A stretch of 64,000 nucleotides of DNA, taken from positions 84,311,857-84,375,856 of the forward strand of contig NC_083407.1 of the NCBI RefSeq assembly GCF_020745735.1, in the 5' to 3' direction. Under the pieces are notes generated by a model. It worked only from the letters and a program-made list of their open reading frames with translations, made no database searches and was not told the origin of the DNA. Made by a program: the position numbers and the translations under genes. The first letter of the stretch is position 1. Each line of letters begins with the position of its first letter. Origin of the DNA: Hemiscyllium ocellatum. Lineage: Eukaryota. Positions 3,367-30,451 of the stretch are shown one piece after another.

Positions 3367-4230
3367 CTGAAAGTACATATTTAAAATACAAGTTACCATA
3401 GACTCAAAAATCAACAGAGTTACCAATAAAGATTGGCCAACTTTATATTTATCCAACCTCATAGCTGGGTGGTGCTCATATCACAGTGATAAAAAGCCAC
3501 ATTTGATTTAACAAAAGGTTCAGATAATTGCTTATTTAAGTGCCATGTCAACCCACAGATGAATTTGGGTAAAAATGTACATTTAAAACAACCTTGATCA
3601 GCAAAGCAACAATAAAATTGAGTAGGAGAACCAAGTTCAGTTCAGACAAATCTACAAGTTATTAGAACTGAGCAAATATACGATGAAAATTAGGATGTTC
3701 ATACAAGCAGATTCAGAAAAAATGTTGTTAAAAAAGAAAAAGGCCTTGACATCCAAGAAAAAGAAGCTGGAAAGCAGAAGTAAAGAATTTAAGATGATAA
3801 GCTAGGAATGATGTTTCACAGGGTTTCAGTCTCTAATAGATGGTGTTGGTAAACAGATTACAAACTTTGTATTAAACCTGTTCAAAGATGTTATTACACA
3901 CCTTTGAAGCAAGTGGAACTTGAATCCAGGCCTCCTGGAGGAGCGGTAAGGGACACGACCACTGCACAAAAACCTACTTAGAATCATGAAATCTCTCGTG
4001 TGAAAGTGGGCCATTTGACCCATTGAGCCGACAGTGACCCTCCCATGAGTATACCACCCAGACCCAGTTTCACCACCCACCCCCGCTTCAGACATGTCCC
4101 CTTTCAGTTGACCTTATTTAAGCCCTTAACAAGCCTCATGTACATAGGTAGCCTCGTGGTCACTGTTTCACCTCTGCAAAAATAACCTGAAGACAAACAA
4201 ATGGGGGAACTAAGTGTTAAAACAAGCTCT

Positions 4231-6632
4231 TGGAGATCCAAGATGGTGGCGACTCAGCAAGTCTGAGTCTATAGTGCTCTTCCAAGATCTAGGCAAAGTG
4301 GGCCACCCTCCTCCACCACACTCACCAAATCATTTAAAATAGTTTTTACTTAATGTAATTAGTGGTTCAGTGCTAAATTTAAACAGTTCAGTCTCCTGTA
4401 AAAATGACTAGGGGAAAGGAGCCCGCAGCTCTCAGCAGGCAGGAGCCCCTCCCCTACCCTCCCCAGCCGCAGCAGAGGCTTCCACAGCCGCCCCCGGGGG
4501 GCTTACCTACGGTGGCGAGCTTTGCAGAAATAATCTCTAAACTCAATGCGAAGAACGATGCTTTCATTGAAGAGTCCCGAAGTCGATGGAATTCATTCTC
4601 GGCCGCGCTACAAAAGTACGGCTGAGACATCAAAGAAATTGAGTGCAGAGTTGGAGGGGCGGAGCTAAAGGCCACGACCTCCGAGGCTATTACAAAAATG
4701 AGGTCGTCGAAAAAATATTTGTTTGCTGGGCCTTCCCGAACGGTAAGAAGGAGGCCAGCATACAAGGTTCCTTGAACAGTGCCTTTAAATCTGGAGGCAG
4801 GATCAGGCCAGGTAAGGATGGAATGGGCCTATCGGGTGGCAATACGCGGGCCCGACTCGAACCAGTGCCCCCCCGCCCGGTCCTGTTCCGGCTGCAGAGC
4901 TATAAGGTGAGGCAGATGCTCTTGGAAGCCTCCGGAAATCTTGGGAAAGATCCCCAAGCCATGACTTATAAAGGATCCAAGATTATGTTATTTCAGGACT
5001 TCTCCCCAGCTCTGGTCCGAAAGAGGAAGGCGTTTGATGAAGCGAAGAAGTCTTTAAGGGATTTAAACATTCAATACTCCTTGCGCTACCCAGCTACTCT
5101 ACGCTTCAGCCATGAAGGGTCGGTGTATAACTTCGGATCACCGGAGAAGGCCAAGGAAATTTTGGACTCTCTGAGATAAATTATAAGAGTTAATTGATGT
5201 TGTTTTGTCCTACCCCCACCTCGGTTTACCCCCTTTTTTTTCCTTTCATTACCTTACTGTTTAATATTATCTCTGGGGAGTGGGAAGAAGTGTTTATTTA
5301 TTCATTCTTTACTAGCGATTTTCTTTCCCTTTTTTTTAAATATAGGCCAGGGGGTCTAGTTAAAGTAGATGGGGAGGAAGGTGGCTACCTTATCCTATTT
5401 TATCTTTGTCCTTGGGAACGGGGTTGTTTTCCCCTGTTATTTTGTATTACTATACTTAATTATTATTTGCTGAGACTGTAATTTTATGTTCATATATGGT
5501 ATTAACATTACCAAATATATCCAGGTGATGTTGTGGGAGATAGGGTACTCATTGTTAGTTCTAGTTTAGTAGTATACTTGAATTTTCTTTATCCTATCGT
5601 GGGGTGCCTAGGTCAAGGGTGGGGCACTGGTTGGGAGAGGTTATGATGGGTTTTTTGGAAAGGAAGTGATGTCCCCTGGGAATAAGGGGGAAGATCTCCA
5701 TTTAAATACGTTTTATACTTTTTTTATTATTTAGAAATTTTTTTTGTTATACTGATCTAAATGAATGAAAGAGCTTTTATTTTTGTGAATTTTATATGCT
5801 CTATGCTCGGGATGTTTTGGATAGGGTTTCTTTTCAGGGGGGTCTCAGACTTGCCCGGTGATTATGGATGGTCGGTCGATTAAATGATGCACTTGGAATG
5901 TCAATTTACCAATCAAAAGGAGGAGAATATTATCAAACCTCAAGAAAGAGAGGATTGATATAGCTCTCCTATAGGAGACACATTTTTGGATCAAGAACAC
6001 CTGAAGTTACAACAGGGAAGAGATTATTTTCCGTTTTTTCTGCGCAGGGAAAAACATTGTGATAAACTAGGTGGTTGCGGGCCTTCATGGACTTTCAAGT
6101 TGGCACAGAATAATTATGGAATATACTCCCCCCGACTTCCTTACAAATATGGTGCACCAGGAGAAAAATCAAATTATTTCATAAAATATGGCAGCCCTTC
6201 TTGAATTACACAAATACAGATATCTCGGTCATCCTACAAGGGCCTTTATTTAATTGAGAGGGTGAATCTGGCTGGTCCGGGGCCCCTGGGAGAGGAATCC
6301 CACACGAATATGGGTTTTGTTGTGATCTGATGTTAACCCATTCCGAGCATGTATATCACTGCTCAATTTCTGTGTTATCTGTTGGGTTTTTCTTTCTCTT
6401 GAATAATGCAAGAATTTTAATCATACACTCTGGTTAGTTGTAAGTTAGATGAGTAGTTAGTTGAGTTTTTTTTTCTCGTTATTTCTTTTTTATTGTTTGA
6501 TAGATTTTGGTTATTATTTATTTAAGATTTAACTGTATATCAATGTTTATACTTGGGTTTTTTTTAAGTTTTCTTTAGTAAACTTGTAAAAACATGTTAA
6601 ATTTTCAATAAAAATATCTATTAAAAAAAAAG
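4231..6632 (+). mobile_element. L1-clade LINE, 5'-intact, internally deleted (ORF1 + short ORF2 ends), with TSD
   Basis: Starts GGAGATCCAAGATGGTGGCG. Degenerate ORF1 4404-5179 (IMLFQDFSPALVRKRKAF...YSLRYPATLR). ORF2 endonuclease start (TWNV, DIALL*ETH) is fused at ~6016 to the ORF2 C-terminus. AATAAA plus poly(A); TSD caagctct at 4223-4230 and 6633-6640. Confidence 0.9.
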
Positions 6633-25363: not shown

Positions 25364-26282
25364 GCAATTTTATCACTAACAAAAACAGGTTCAACTGATC
25401 AGCTACCGAATTATGGTTCAAAATCAACAATAATGTGACATAAGACAAAATAAATTACGTAAAGGTCACCTTATTCTACCTTTGTGATCTGGACTTTTGA
25501 TCAACAGAATTTTTCCTTTTATTGGCTATGTCTCCTACCTCTGATATATCTGCAAAACTCTGTCTGTCTTACCTGCCCTACTTATGAATCAACGTGTGCA
25601 TTTGGATTTAAAGGGCTTTTACTTTAAGTTTGCATATTAGTCCCTAACAAACTGTTTTGCCTTTGCAAACAGATACATTTTTTAATAAAAATAACTTTGT
25701 TTGTTTGTTGATGAAATCTGGTGTGAGCTTCATGTCAGATAGCAAACAAAGTAACCTTGGTGATGGAATGGTCTTTTACACATTTGAGACAACTTGTCGA
25801 TTCATGGAGCTTGATATCCAATACACTTTAGAACGAAATTCCAAGGACTAATGGACCCACTGAGAACAAACCCATCTTCTTCTTGCTGTTGTTCCAGATT
25901 CCAACACAAGAGGAATCATCTGTTCAACATCTATGGTCAAGCGGTGAGAATCCTTTATTTGCTTTTGAGTTGATGCAGATTAATCTGGGGGAGGGGGTTT
26001 TCACTCTGGCAGGATTTGCTGCTGTTGTGGACATCTGTGAAGCAGGGAGTGCTTGACCAGTTAATTGTTGACCTGTTAATGGGTGTCTCAAGGGCCTCAA
26101 TTTATCTATGAGTGAGAAGACAGATCTTAACCTTCCCAACCCCTGACCTAATTGACAGGGAATCAGATAGGCAAGAAGCTGACTCCTCCAGGGTGACCAG
26201 ACAACCTGGATTTTCCAAGAACATAGAACAATACAGCACAGAACAGGCCCTTCAGCCCACAATGTTGTGCCGAACATCTATC

Positions 26283-29185
26283 CTAGATTAAGCACCCATC
26301 CATGTACCTATCCAATTGCCGCTTAAAGGTCGCCAATGATTCTGACTCTACCACTCCCACAGGCAGCGCATTCCATGCCCCAACCACTCTCTGGGTAAAG
26401 AACCCACCCCTGACATCTCCCCTATACCTTCCACCCTTCACCTTAAATTTATGTCCCCTTGTAATACTCTGTTGTACCCGGGGAAAAAGTTTCTGACTGT
26501 CTACTCTATCTATTCCTCTGATCATCTTATAAACCTCTATAAAGTCACCCCTCATCCTTCGCCGTTCCAACGAGAAAAGGCCGAGAACTCTCAACCTATC
26601 CTCGTACGACCTATTCTCCATTCCAGGCAACATCCTGGTAAATCTTCTATGCACCCTCTCCAAAGCTTCCACATCTTTCCTAAAGTGAGGCGACCAGAAC
26701 TGCACACAGTACTCCAAATGTGGCCTAACCAAAGTCCTGTACAGCTGCAACATCACTTCACGACTCTTGAATTCAATCCCTCTGCTAACGAACGCTAATA
26801 CACCATAGGCCTTCTTACGAGCTCTATCCACCTGAGTGGCAACTTTCAAAGATCTATGTACATAGACCCCAAGATCCCTCTGTTCCTCCACCTGACTAAG
26901 AACCCTACCGTTAACCCTGTATTCCGCATTCTTATTTGTTCTTCCAAAATGGACAACCTCACATTGGCAGGGTTGAACTCCATCTGCCACTCCTCAGCCC
27001 AGCTCTGCATCATATCTAAGTCCCTTTGCAAACGACAACAGCCCTCCTCACTGTCCACAACTCCAGCAATCTTCGTATCATCTGCAAATTTACTGACCCA
27101 CCCTTCAACTCCCTCATCCAAGTCATTAATAAAAATTACAAACAGCAGAGGACCCAGAACTGATCCCTGCAGAACTCCACTTGTAACTGGGCTCCAGGCT
27201 GAATATTTACCATCTATCACCACTCTGACTTCGACCGGTTAGCCAGTTTTCAATCCAATTGGCCAAGTTTCCCTCTATCCCATGCCTCCTGACTTTCCGC
27301 ATAAGCCTACCATGAGGAACCTTATCAAATGCTTTACTAAAATCCATGTACACTACATCCACTGCTCTACCCTCATCCACATGCTTGGTCACCTCCTCAA
27401 AGAATTCAATAAGACTTGTAAGGCAAGACCTACCCTTCACAAATCCGTGCTGGCTGCCCCTAATCAAGCAGTGTCTTTCCAGATACTCATAAATCCTATC
27501 CCTCAGCACCCTTTCCATTACTTTGCCTACCACAGAAGTAAGACTAACTGGCCTGTAATTCCCGGGGTTATCCCTATTCCCTTTTTTGAACAGGGGCACA
27601 ACATTCGCTACACTCCAGTCCCCTGGTACCACCCCCGTTGACAATGAAGACGAAAAGATCATTGCCAACGGTACTGCAATTTCCTCTCTTGCTTCCCACA
27701 TAATCCTAGGATATATCTCGTCAGGCCCGGGGGACTTGTCTATCCTCAAGTTGTTCAAAATGTCCAACACATCTTCCTTCCTAACAAGTATCTCTTCTAG
27801 CTTACCAGTCCGTTTCACACTCTCCTCTTCAACAATACAGTCCCTCTCGTTCGTAAATACTGAAGAAAAGTACTTGTTCAAGACCTCTCCTATCTCTTCC
27901 GACTCAATACACAATCTCCCACTACTGTCCTTGATCAGACCTCCCCTCGTTCTTGTCATTCTCATGTTTCTCACATACGCATAAAATGCCTTGGGGTTAT
28001 CCTTGATCCTGTCCGCCAAGGATTTTTCATGCCCTCTCTTAGCTCTCCTAATCCCTTTCTTCAGGTCCCTTCTGGCTATCCTGTATCCCTCCACTGCTCT
28101 GTCTGAACCCTGTTTCCTCAACCTTATGTAAGCCTCCTTCTTCCTCTTTACTAGACATTCAACCTCCCTCGTCAACCAAGGCTCCCTCACGACCATTTCT
28201 TTCCTGCCTGATAGGTACATACATATCAAGGACACGTCGTATCTGCTCCTTGAAAAAGTTCCACATTTCCACCACATCCTTCCCTGACAGCCTATGCACC
28301 CAACTTACGCTCCTCAAATCCTGTCTTACAGCATCATAATTTCCCTTCCCCCAATTGTAAAATCTACTCTGTTGTGCGCACCTATCTCTCTCCATAACCA
28401 AGGTGAAAGTCACAGAATTGTGGTCACCATCACCAAAATGTTCACCCACTAACAAGCCCATCACTTGTCCTGGTTCATTACCGAGTACCAAGTCCAATAT
28501 GGCCTCCCCTCTGGTTGGACAATCTACATACTGAGTTAGAAAAGCTTCCTGGACACACTGCACAAACACCGCCCCATCCAATCTACTTGATCTAAAGAGC
28601 TTCCAATCAATATTTGGGAAGTTGAAGTCGCCCATGACTACGATCCTGTGGCTTCTGCACCTTTCCAAAATCTGTTTCCCAATCTGTTTCTCCACATCTC
28701 TGCTGCTATTGGGGGGCCTATAGTAAACACCCAACAAGGTGACTGCACCTTTCCTATTTCCGACTTCAGCCCATACTACCTCCAAAGGCAGATCCCCCTC
28801 AAACTTCCTTTCTGCAGCCGTTATACCATTTCTAATTAGCAATGCCACCCCCCCCTCCTTTTTTACCACCCTCCCTAATCTTACTGAAACATCTGTAACC
28901 AGGAACCTCCAACAACCATTCCTGTCCTTCATCTATCCACGTTTCCGTGATGGCCACAACATCGTAGTCCCAGGTACCGATCCATGCCTTAAGTTCACCC
29001 ACCTTATTTCTGATACTCCTTGCGTTGAAGTATACGCACTTGAGCCCATCTCTGTGTCCGCAAGTATTCCCTGTCAGTGCTACCTTCTCCACAGCCTCCC
29101 TACATTCTTGGGCATCCTGACACACAGCTAGCTTACTTGCTGGACTACAAGTCCGGATCCCATCCCCCTGCCAAACTAGTTTAAA
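26283..29185 (-). pseudogene. CR1 ORF2: APE endonuclease + reverse transcriptase, four frameshifts
   Basis: YFNARSIRNK, AITETW, GDFNFP, GDHN, KSPGPD, YRPVSLTS, MDFSKAFD, QGSVLGP, FADD; frame changes at ~28855, ~28190, ~27225, ~26965. Confidence 0.9.
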
Positions 29186-30106
29186 CCCCCCCCGAAGAGT
29201 GCTAGCAAACCTACCCCCCAGGATATTGGTGCCCTTCTGGTTCAGGTGCAACCCGTCCTGTTTGTACAGGTCCCACCTTCCCCAGAATGCAGTCCAATTG
29301 TCCAAATACCTGAAGCCCTCCCTCCTACACCATCCTTGCAGCCACGTGTTCAACTGCACTCTCTCCCTATTCCTTGCCTCATTGTCACGTGGCACCGGCA
29401 ACAACCCAGAGATGACGACTCTGTCTGTTCTAGCTTTTAGCTTCCAGCCTAACTCCCTGAGCTCTTGAATGACCTCCCCACCCCTCTTCCTACCTATGTC
29501 GTTGGTGCCAATGTGTACCACGACTTCTGGCTGCACATCCTCCCCCTTAAGGATTCTGAACACACGGTCCGAGACGTCTCGGACCCTAGCACCCGGGAGG
29601 CAACAAACCATCCGAGAGTCTCGCCCATGTCCACAGAACCGCCTGTCCGTCCCTCTAACTAGAGAGTCTCCTATAACTAGCGCTCTCCTGCTCTCCCCCT
29701 TTCCCTTCTTAGTCTCAGAGCCAGACCTCACGCCACAGACCCCTTCACTGCAGCTTACACCTGCAAGGCTATCCCCCCCAACAGTTTCCAAAGCTGTATA
29801 CTTATTGTTTAGGGGAACGACCACAGGGGAACCCTGCACTGCCTGCTTCTTCCCCTTCCCACCTCTAACTGTTACCCAGCTACCTCTGTTCTCCGGGGTA
29901 ACTATGTCCCTGTAGCTTCTATCAATCACCCTCTCAGCCTCTCGAATAATTCTCAGTTCATCCAACTCCAGTTCCAGTTCCCTAACTCGTTCGGTGAGGA
30001 GCAGGATCTGATTGCATTTCCTGCAGACAAAGTTGGCAGGAGTATCGGTGGTCACCCCTACCTCAAACATCCTGCAGGAGGAACATTCCACTGCCTGCGC
30101 TGCCAC
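29176..30106 (-). CDS. CR1 ORF1: zinc finger/leucine zipper + SGNH(GDSL) esterase
   Basis: CSSC..CRKC, coiled coil ERVRELELELDELR, VIGDSLVR, CLPGAR, VVVHIGTNDI, DGLHLN. Start codon uncertain (GTG at 30106). Confidence 0.85.
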
Positions 30107-30295
30107 GACTGTACACTTTGTCTCCAAAACAAGAACACTGAGTCAATAACACTGAGTCGCTTACCTGTGGACTTTAAAGTTAGGTTAGAGGAGGAGGGTG
30201 GGAGGGAGGCCCTAGGAAGTAGGGCCTGGAGTCTAGAACACACCTACTCAAATACTACTCACTTACCTTCCCGACCAGCTCTGCGCTCCGACCTC

Positions 30296-30451
30296 ACTTC
30301 CGCCCGGCTCGCACCGCTCTCCGCGGTGAAAAGACCGTTGTCGTCGAGGTAAGTTCTTTAAATAGGTAAGGTAAGTGAGTAGTATTTAAAGAACTTACCT
30401 CGACGACAACGGTCTTTTCACCGCGGAGAGCGGCGCGAGCCGGGCGGAAGT
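30296..30451. repeat. Near-perfect inverted repeat, 69-bp arms, 18-bp spacer
   Basis: 30296-30364 vs 30383-30451: 68 of 69 positions complementary. Confidence 0.97.

Follow-up and report, generated by a model that had tools for sequence, protein, structure and literature searches.

How a CR1-type long interspersed nuclear element (LINE) produces the protein of its second open reading frame (ORF2) is the question raised by a 64,000-nucleotide stretch of the Hemiscyllium ocellatum genome (NCBI RefSeq assembly GCF_020745735.1, contig NC_083407.1, positions 84,311,857 to 84,375,856 of the forward strand). This whole stretch is referred to below as the window, and positions are given in its own numbering. 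In most non-mammalian vertebrates the main LINEs belong to the CR1 group, and to our knowledge the route to their ORF2 protein has not been worked out. The window contains a decayed CR1 copy on the minus strand, in which the end of ORF1 and the beginning of ORF2 meet at the heptamer TTTAAAC. An original prediction, made from the letters of the window, proposed that this heptamer (U UUA AAC in the RNA) directs a programmed −1 ribosomal frameshift. The comparisons described here suggest that it is probably a conserved −1 frameshift signal of unusual build, which would serve as the ORF1/ORF2 recoding site of the CR1 family.

On the minus strand, positions 29200-29140 contain the sequence CTTC, eight Gs, TTTAAAC and TAG, then TTTGGCAGGGGGATGGGATCC, and the TAG is followed by TTTGG, in agreement with the letters and coordinates given in the prediction. 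The run of eight Gs (29186..29193) lies directly 5′ of the heptamer (29179..29185), which is itself followed by TAG (29176..29178), the ORF1 stop codon in the in-phase relatives. Two G tracts, GGGGG at 29168-29164 and GGG at 29161-29159 (together 29159..29168), start at +11 and +18 after the heptamer. The eight Gs place ORF1 and ORF2 in one frame, and the heptamer is here read out of phase as TTT AAA C, whereas relatives read N-NT TTA AAC. As had been claimed, the translated ORF lacks a Met from the junction as far as the endonuclease motifs CVYFNARS/AITETW. The junction 20-mer occurs once in the window. A heptamer in a single copy is by itself within chance expectation, and the significance of the junction derives from its conservation across lineages, not from its presence in one element.

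The Hemiscyllium junction was compared with the junction DNA of 12 other loci, from Mustelus (L001), Chrysemys (L002), Leucoraja (L003), Hyla (L004), Zootoca (L005), two unknown ENA contigs (L006 and L012), and turtle-like (L007 and L008), bird-like (L009 and L010) and shark-like (L013) elements; two of these loci were supplied by a metagenome scan. In all 13 junctions TTTAAAC is immediately followed by a stop codon, the identity of which varies (TAG, TAA or TGA) while its position is fixed. The heptamer is in the X XXY YYZ phase of ORF1 in 12 of the 13 junctions, the Hemiscyllium copy being the exception, and this phase is also found in the 7-G minority of the Hemiscyllium CR1 family. ORF2, encoding the endonuclease and reverse transcriptase, is in the −1 frame and opens with F-K-L in 12/12 other loci. 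The −1 frame is open for just 3-84 nucleotides upstream of the site, whereas the +1 frame is closed. The ORF2 frame has its first Met at positions ranging from residue 5 to residue 83, or none at all, and no AUG is conserved. The downstream ORF is thus in the −1 frame, overlaps the site and has no conserved start of its own, as expected for −1 frameshifting. In the Zootoca element both ORFs are open in this layout (346 residues for ORF1, 2934 nucleotides for ORF2). At the shark-like locus L013 the heptamer follows an A and seven Gs and stands in phase, just as had been proposed for a run of seven Gs. Conservation of the TTTAAAC-stop arrangement among vertebrate CR1 elements therefore extends from sharks to birds, with ORF2 in the −1 frame.

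The letters flanking the heptamer are not conserved across the junctions, whereas the heptamer itself is invariant (13/13). Since the flanks have diverged, the TTA codon (one of six for Leu), the AAC codon (one of two for Asn) and the preceding T are held at the nucleotide level; by our own estimate, the combination would be met under protein constraint alone in about 1 in 48 cases per independent lineage. A 7-mer is expected several times per 64 kb, which would favour a chance occurrence. However, the heptamer with an adjacent stop is present in every junction, in phase in all but one, in elements whose ORF1 proteins are only 27-71% alike, and the probability that the motif is due to chance or to an assembly artefact is negligible.

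The same loci bear on the possibility that ORF2 is translated independently, by termination-reinitiation or internal initiation, and that the heptamer has been kept for another purpose, for example as a motif for protein binding or reinitiation. Independent translation of ORF2 is known from L1 and SART1 (PMC3708506), and no strong 3′ stimulator is found at the CR1 junctions. On the other hand, neither a stop-start overlap of the SART1 type (UAAUG) nor an ATG near the ORF1 stop is present in any of the 13 junctions, and a conserved AUG is lacking. In addition, several lineages have an ORF2 frame that becomes open just 3-6 nucleotides before the heptamer, with F-K-L always kept, and the heptamer is in exact phase with ORF1 in each of the 12 other loci. 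Independent initiation of ORF2 is accordingly regarded as unlikely.

In the frameshift mechanism that we consider probable, ORF1 ends in ...NNT TTA AAC stop, and the ribosome would decode U UUA AAC with the 0-frame stop codon next in the A site. A few ribosomes would slip back by one base, the Leu tRNA moving from UUA to UUU and the Asn tRNA from AAC to AAA, and would continue into ORF2, which lacks an AUG, to give ...L-N-L-x... at the joint. The stop codon and the downstream G tracts may aid the slip. The product would be an ORF1-ORF2 fusion made at low frequency, following the Gag-Pol pattern, and a fusion of this kind can reasonably be inferred. Observed directly are the heptamer and its phase, the stop codon next to it, a −1 ORF devoid of a conserved start, and the conservation of this arrangement; the slip, its rate, the contribution of the stop and G tracts, and any later cleavage of the fusion are predicted from sequence.

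The ends of ORF1 proteins agree with the junction DNA. A protein search with the read-through ORF as query yields about 100 ORF1 homologues of roughly 300-340 residues, from sharks, rays, coelacanth, frogs, turtles, lizards, a snake and unnamed contigs. An L-N-stop end is present in 79 of the 97 homologues that retain the esterase DGxHL motif, and the tail following DGxHL has the same length, 26 residues, in 70 of these 79. In 78/79 proteins the L is preceded by a residue for which a codon ending in T exists (A, G, S, T, C, Y, D, I, F or N), with E as the one exception. In a HMMER search of 1.84 billion representatives, the ORF1 matches among the best 150 stop at query residues ~303-316, which corresponds to the junction, and only short fragments such as P0161 cross it. 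A second ORF1 lineage of nine proteins, 33-57% alike, has an invariant Q-G-N-stop end, and a third lineage ends in (S/A)-K-N-stop (proteins of the two lineages: P0159, P0165, P0097, P0178, P0186, P0188, P0193, P0240; P0200, P0227, P0238). Judged from the proteins, these ends would fit CAG GGA AAC and NNA AAA AAC, and thus two other classical heptamers, G GGA AAC and A AAA AAC, at the position of TTTAAAC. A scan of viral contigs yields no match to the Q-G-N lineage.

Several database entries of other names also match CR1 ORF1. P0001, filed as a Pseudomonas aeruginosa SGNH/GDSL hydrolase, is 80% identical to the shark CR1 ORF1 described here and most likely represents fish DNA contaminating a bacterial assembly. 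The gene models P0034 ("40S ribosomal protein S24 isoform X2", Pristis), P0037 ("hydroxyacid oxidase 2 isoform X1", Hypanus) and P0071 ("transmembrane protein 204 isoform X3", Mobula) have probably swallowed a LINE. On a contig labelled Oreochromis (L011, protein P0109, positions 3501-4373), an esterase ORF1-like gene ends in ...KLPKI-stop. Neither the heptamer nor an ORF2 is found behind this gene, which may be a solo or domesticated ORF1 or belong to a different LINE group, and the locus was excluded as uninformative.

The Hemiscyllium element occupies 26215..30250 on the minus strand, its ends being approximate, as judged by Pfam and tblastn matches and by the 3′ tail of short TGTTCT-like repeats, which ends near 26215. 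The Pfam domains follow the order GDSL esterase (PF13472), Exo_endo_phos (PF03372/PF14529) and RVT_1 (PF00078). The ORF1 remnant (29194..30127) contains a CxxC...CxxC knuckle, a coiled-coil-like stretch and an SGNH/GDSL esterase, and the ORF2 remnant (26289..29185), delineated by tblastn and Pfam, comprises a linker, an apurinic/apyrimidinic (AP) endonuclease and a reverse transcriptase. The copy thus carries the hallmarks of a CR1-type LINE, namely a Cys knuckle, coiled coil and SGNH esterase in ORF1 and an AP endonuclease and reverse transcriptase in ORF2; the assignment to CR1 is based on the similarity of both ORFs to annotated vertebrate copies. The open 978-residue ORF2 of the lizard Zootoca aligns from its first residue, from 29185 to 26289, but the match is split into five frame pieces, interrupted near 28873, 28183, 27226 and 26960 (tblastn). 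At the junction ORF1 runs directly into ORF2 because of the eight Gs, and a 431-residue ORF (28832..30127, minus strand) continues from ORF1 via FKLVWQG into the start of the endonuclease. The position of the ORF1 start Met of relatives is occupied by GTG, near 30107. With the extra G, four frame breaks in ORF2 and the ORF1 start Met lost, the copy is dead, and nothing works at this locus, where the heptamer is out of phase. The element is flanked immediately on its 5′ side by an inverted repeat, nearly perfect and rich in CpG, at 30250-30451.

To place the eight Gs in the context of the family, Logan contigs of three DNA runs from three species were placed on 28900-29500 at a likeness of at least 90%, and variants of at least 5% were listed. 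The share of a variant is given as contig word depth, which is a rough gauge of copy share. Contigs with eight Gs account for about 70-80% of the word depth in the three species, the 7-G form for 13%, 29% and 21% in runs 1, 2 and 3, and the 6-G form for 7%, ~0% and ~0%, respectively. The 9-G form is absent from the variants listed in the three runs, which also show no variant within the heptamer. At 29176 a C>T change on the plus strand is found in 90-92% of the depth, such that the family majority has TAA instead of TAG; in the 7-G phase TAA is still a stop. Contigs that break at 29192 represent diverged subfamilies with T or C and seven Gs, in phase. In one raw RNA run, 29 reads lie on this stretch, and the four that span the G run all have eight Gs, a count that bears on the letters and not on translation. 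The 8-G state is therefore real, shared across species, and the majority form among close relatives.

For the eighth G the original prediction named a real insertion or a homopolymer error. A homopolymer or assembly error and an insertion private to this copy can both be discarded, the former because the 8-G form occurs in the runs of three species and the latter because it is the majority state in relatives from these species; an artefact is thereby refuted. The proposed fusion of both ORFs into one frame does hold for this copy. A consensus that is a single fused ORF had been named as refuting the prediction; this applies to the subfamily, in which the fused 8-G form predominates, but not to the clade. 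The frame change might also arise at the nucleic-acid level, through polymerase or reverse-transcriptase slippage that adds a G to the run, in which case ribosomes would not slip. Consistent with this, the run length within the family is 6, 7 or 8 Gs. Most lineages, however, have no G run before the heptamer (e.g., GAGGGC, GTGAGAC or AGGAGTG), yet keep the heptamer and stop. Slippage on nucleic acid is for this reason not a general mechanism, and as an explanation of the junction it is very improbable.

Further observations concern the surroundings of the G run. Within 29186-29309, two of the three species have many low-depth contigs in which the G run is joined to places 70-120 nucleotides deeper in the ORF1 tail, or which stop exactly at 29192. 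The G run is a frequent alignment breakpoint, and the preceding ORF1 tail differs between subfamilies. The 138-residue fragment P0161, from another subfamily, reads ...TGGFKLDWQG... across the junction; read-through at the G run beside the heptamer is consequently not unique to the subfamily of the Hemiscyllium copy. In run X23, a polyA single-cell RNA run of a related species, the 29 reads on 28900-29500 were obtained from a 2% sample and map in both directions; some CR1 copies are thus transcribed or lie within transcripts.

A number of findings weigh against ribosomal frameshifting at the CR1 junction. In the subfamily of the Hemiscyllium copy, most elements are in-frame ORF1-ORF2 fusions, for which no slip is needed. 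The compared loci were found via called ORF1 proteins, which introduces a bias towards copies with an intact ORF1 end. Double coding, in which the same letters specify L-N in one frame and F-K-L in the other, could be an added source of conservation. Furthermore, no stable fold is found 3′ of the heptamer: minimum free energy z scores for 90 and 130 nucleotides at 11 junctions are ~0, no better than those of shuffled sequences, with one of 26 values at −2.4, and RNAalifold predicts 0 pairs for 12 sequences. As no stable or conserved 3′ structure is present, the efficiency of the slip could be very low.

The first of these findings is central to the proposal that the shark subfamily propagates as an in-frame 8-G polyprotein, the heptamer and stop being ancestral relics. 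The excess of the 8-G form over the 7-G form in three species supports this proposal, as does the read-through form in another subfamily, represented by P0161. Contig depth is a rough measure, however, and the clipped contigs at 29192 reveal further 7-G subfamilies that are in phase. Moreover, the 8-G copies could be dead on arrival or could have been mobilised in trans. None of those seen was both full-length and open, and in all other lineages the two frames are separate. A fused 8-G master is therefore a possible, though not a probable, explanation. The 8-G copies may descend from a fused master with a working polyprotein, may have moved in trans, or may be self-enriched by a slip-free supply of ORF2 protein. 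The last option can be tentatively extended, in a reading that we consider rather doubtful, to view 8-G copies as natural "pre-shifted" variants of a frameshifting element. The extra G would make the rare frameshift product the default, and RNAs of this type would make ORF2 protein at every pass and dominate insertions by cis preference. The G tracts at +11/+18 would in the same reading act as a structure-free, factor-dependent stimulator.

If the heptamer is a frameshift signal, its 3′ stimulator is likely a G-rich element 11-20 nucleotides downstream rather than a stem or pseudoknot. A stem-loop or pseudoknot 5-9 nucleotides after the heptamer was not found, although pseudoknots were not searched for explicitly. 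The letters of both pairings proposed in the original prediction are present (GGACT/AGTCC, 29154-29142; GGGATCC, 29161-29155, opposite GGATGCCC, 29117-29110), but the pairings are supported neither statistically nor comparatively. A UGGGA...UCCA pairing common to three shark copies was dropped, as it shows zero covariation. No junction contains a G-quadruplex motif of four G3 tracts, and the only Rfam match is a sub-threshold microRNA on the opposite strand. In contrast to structure, Gs downstream are conserved: G is present at +11 in 12/13 junctions, at +18 in 13/13, and at the positions from +11 to +15 in 10-12 of the 13. Eight different residues (Q, P, L, W, V, K, S and R) are specified by the ORF2-frame codon ending at +11, which has the form NNG in 12/13 junctions, and the codon after it is GGG in 9/13. 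Because the encoded residues vary and the NNG form is retained, the constraint acts on the RNA and not on the protein alone.

The predicted mechanism shares several features with known recoding systems. At the ORF1a/1b site of coronaviruses and arteriviruses, the enzyme-encoding ORF lies downstream in the −1 frame without a start of its own, and is reached by slippage on U UUA AAC in combination with a pseudoknot. In "shifty stop" −1 sites, the stop codon directly follows the slip site. The CR1 stop codon likewise adjoins the heptamer in every junction, in spite of its varying identity, and might promote the slip. The CR1 heptamer is identical to that of coronaviruses and arteriviruses and follows the same phase rule (heptamers in PMC5009743). 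Unlike the viral sites, it has no detected pseudoknot or stem, the 0-frame stop touches the heptamer, and the host element is a cellular LINE instead of an RNA virus. In Gag-Pol of retroviruses and other long terminal repeat (LTR) elements and in PEG10 (G GGA AAC), an abundant RNA-binding first protein and a rare reverse-transcriptase fusion are made in a ratio that depends on a slip where the first ORF ends (PMC5009743); the corresponding behaviour of CR1 is predicted. CR1 differs in being a non-LTR element with an ORF1 of the esterase type instead of Gag. L1, by reinitiation, and SART1, by UAAUG coupling, solve the shared problem of making little ORF2 protein from a bicistronic LINE RNA (PMC3708506). 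CR1, in contrast, has neither a spacer nor a stop-start overlap, and its ORF2 is in the −1 frame with no conserved AUG. The start of the CR1 G-rich element at ~11 nucleotides is close to the range reviewed for linear or factor-dependent stimulators and resembles that of the trans-factor stimulators, the C-rich motif of arterivirus nsp2TF and cardiovirus 2A (PMC5009743). The CR1 motif is G-rich, and the likeness is one of analogy only.

No prior description of frameshifting at the CR1 junction was found in the literature searched; an early remark in passing on a −1 overlap is possible in the chicken and turtle CR1 papers of 1997 (Haas 1997, Kajikawa 1997). A search of full-text literature for the heptamer together with non-LTR elements or LINEs gave nothing relevant. 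CR1 frameshifting is not mentioned in a review of recoding (PMC5009743), in a 2026 survey of CR1-group elements (PMC13343379), in papers on ORF1 modularity (PMC4120745), the esterase structure (PMC3905857) and amniote CR1 elements (PMC4316615), or in a paper on 2A recoding in CR1-clade LINEs (PMC3708506). New in the present analysis are the G-run census, the wider set of junction DNA, the negative structure tests and the constraint on the G tracts.

For the CR1 family, an invariant, in-phase site that touches the ORF1 stop codon predicts a Gag-Pol-like fusion, unlike in L1, and the putative slip site would account for an ORF2 that has no start codon. The site would represent a candidate frameshift signal apparently able to act in the absence of a stem. 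For annotators the arrangement provides a simple rule, namely to join the CR1 ORFs across TTTAAAC-stop. Should the 8-G copies indeed be pre-shifted variants, they would provide genetic evidence that the ORF1-ORF2 fusion is the form in which the CR1 enzyme works, and the shark subfamily would represent a LINE that is passing from frameshift-dependent to single-ORF expression.

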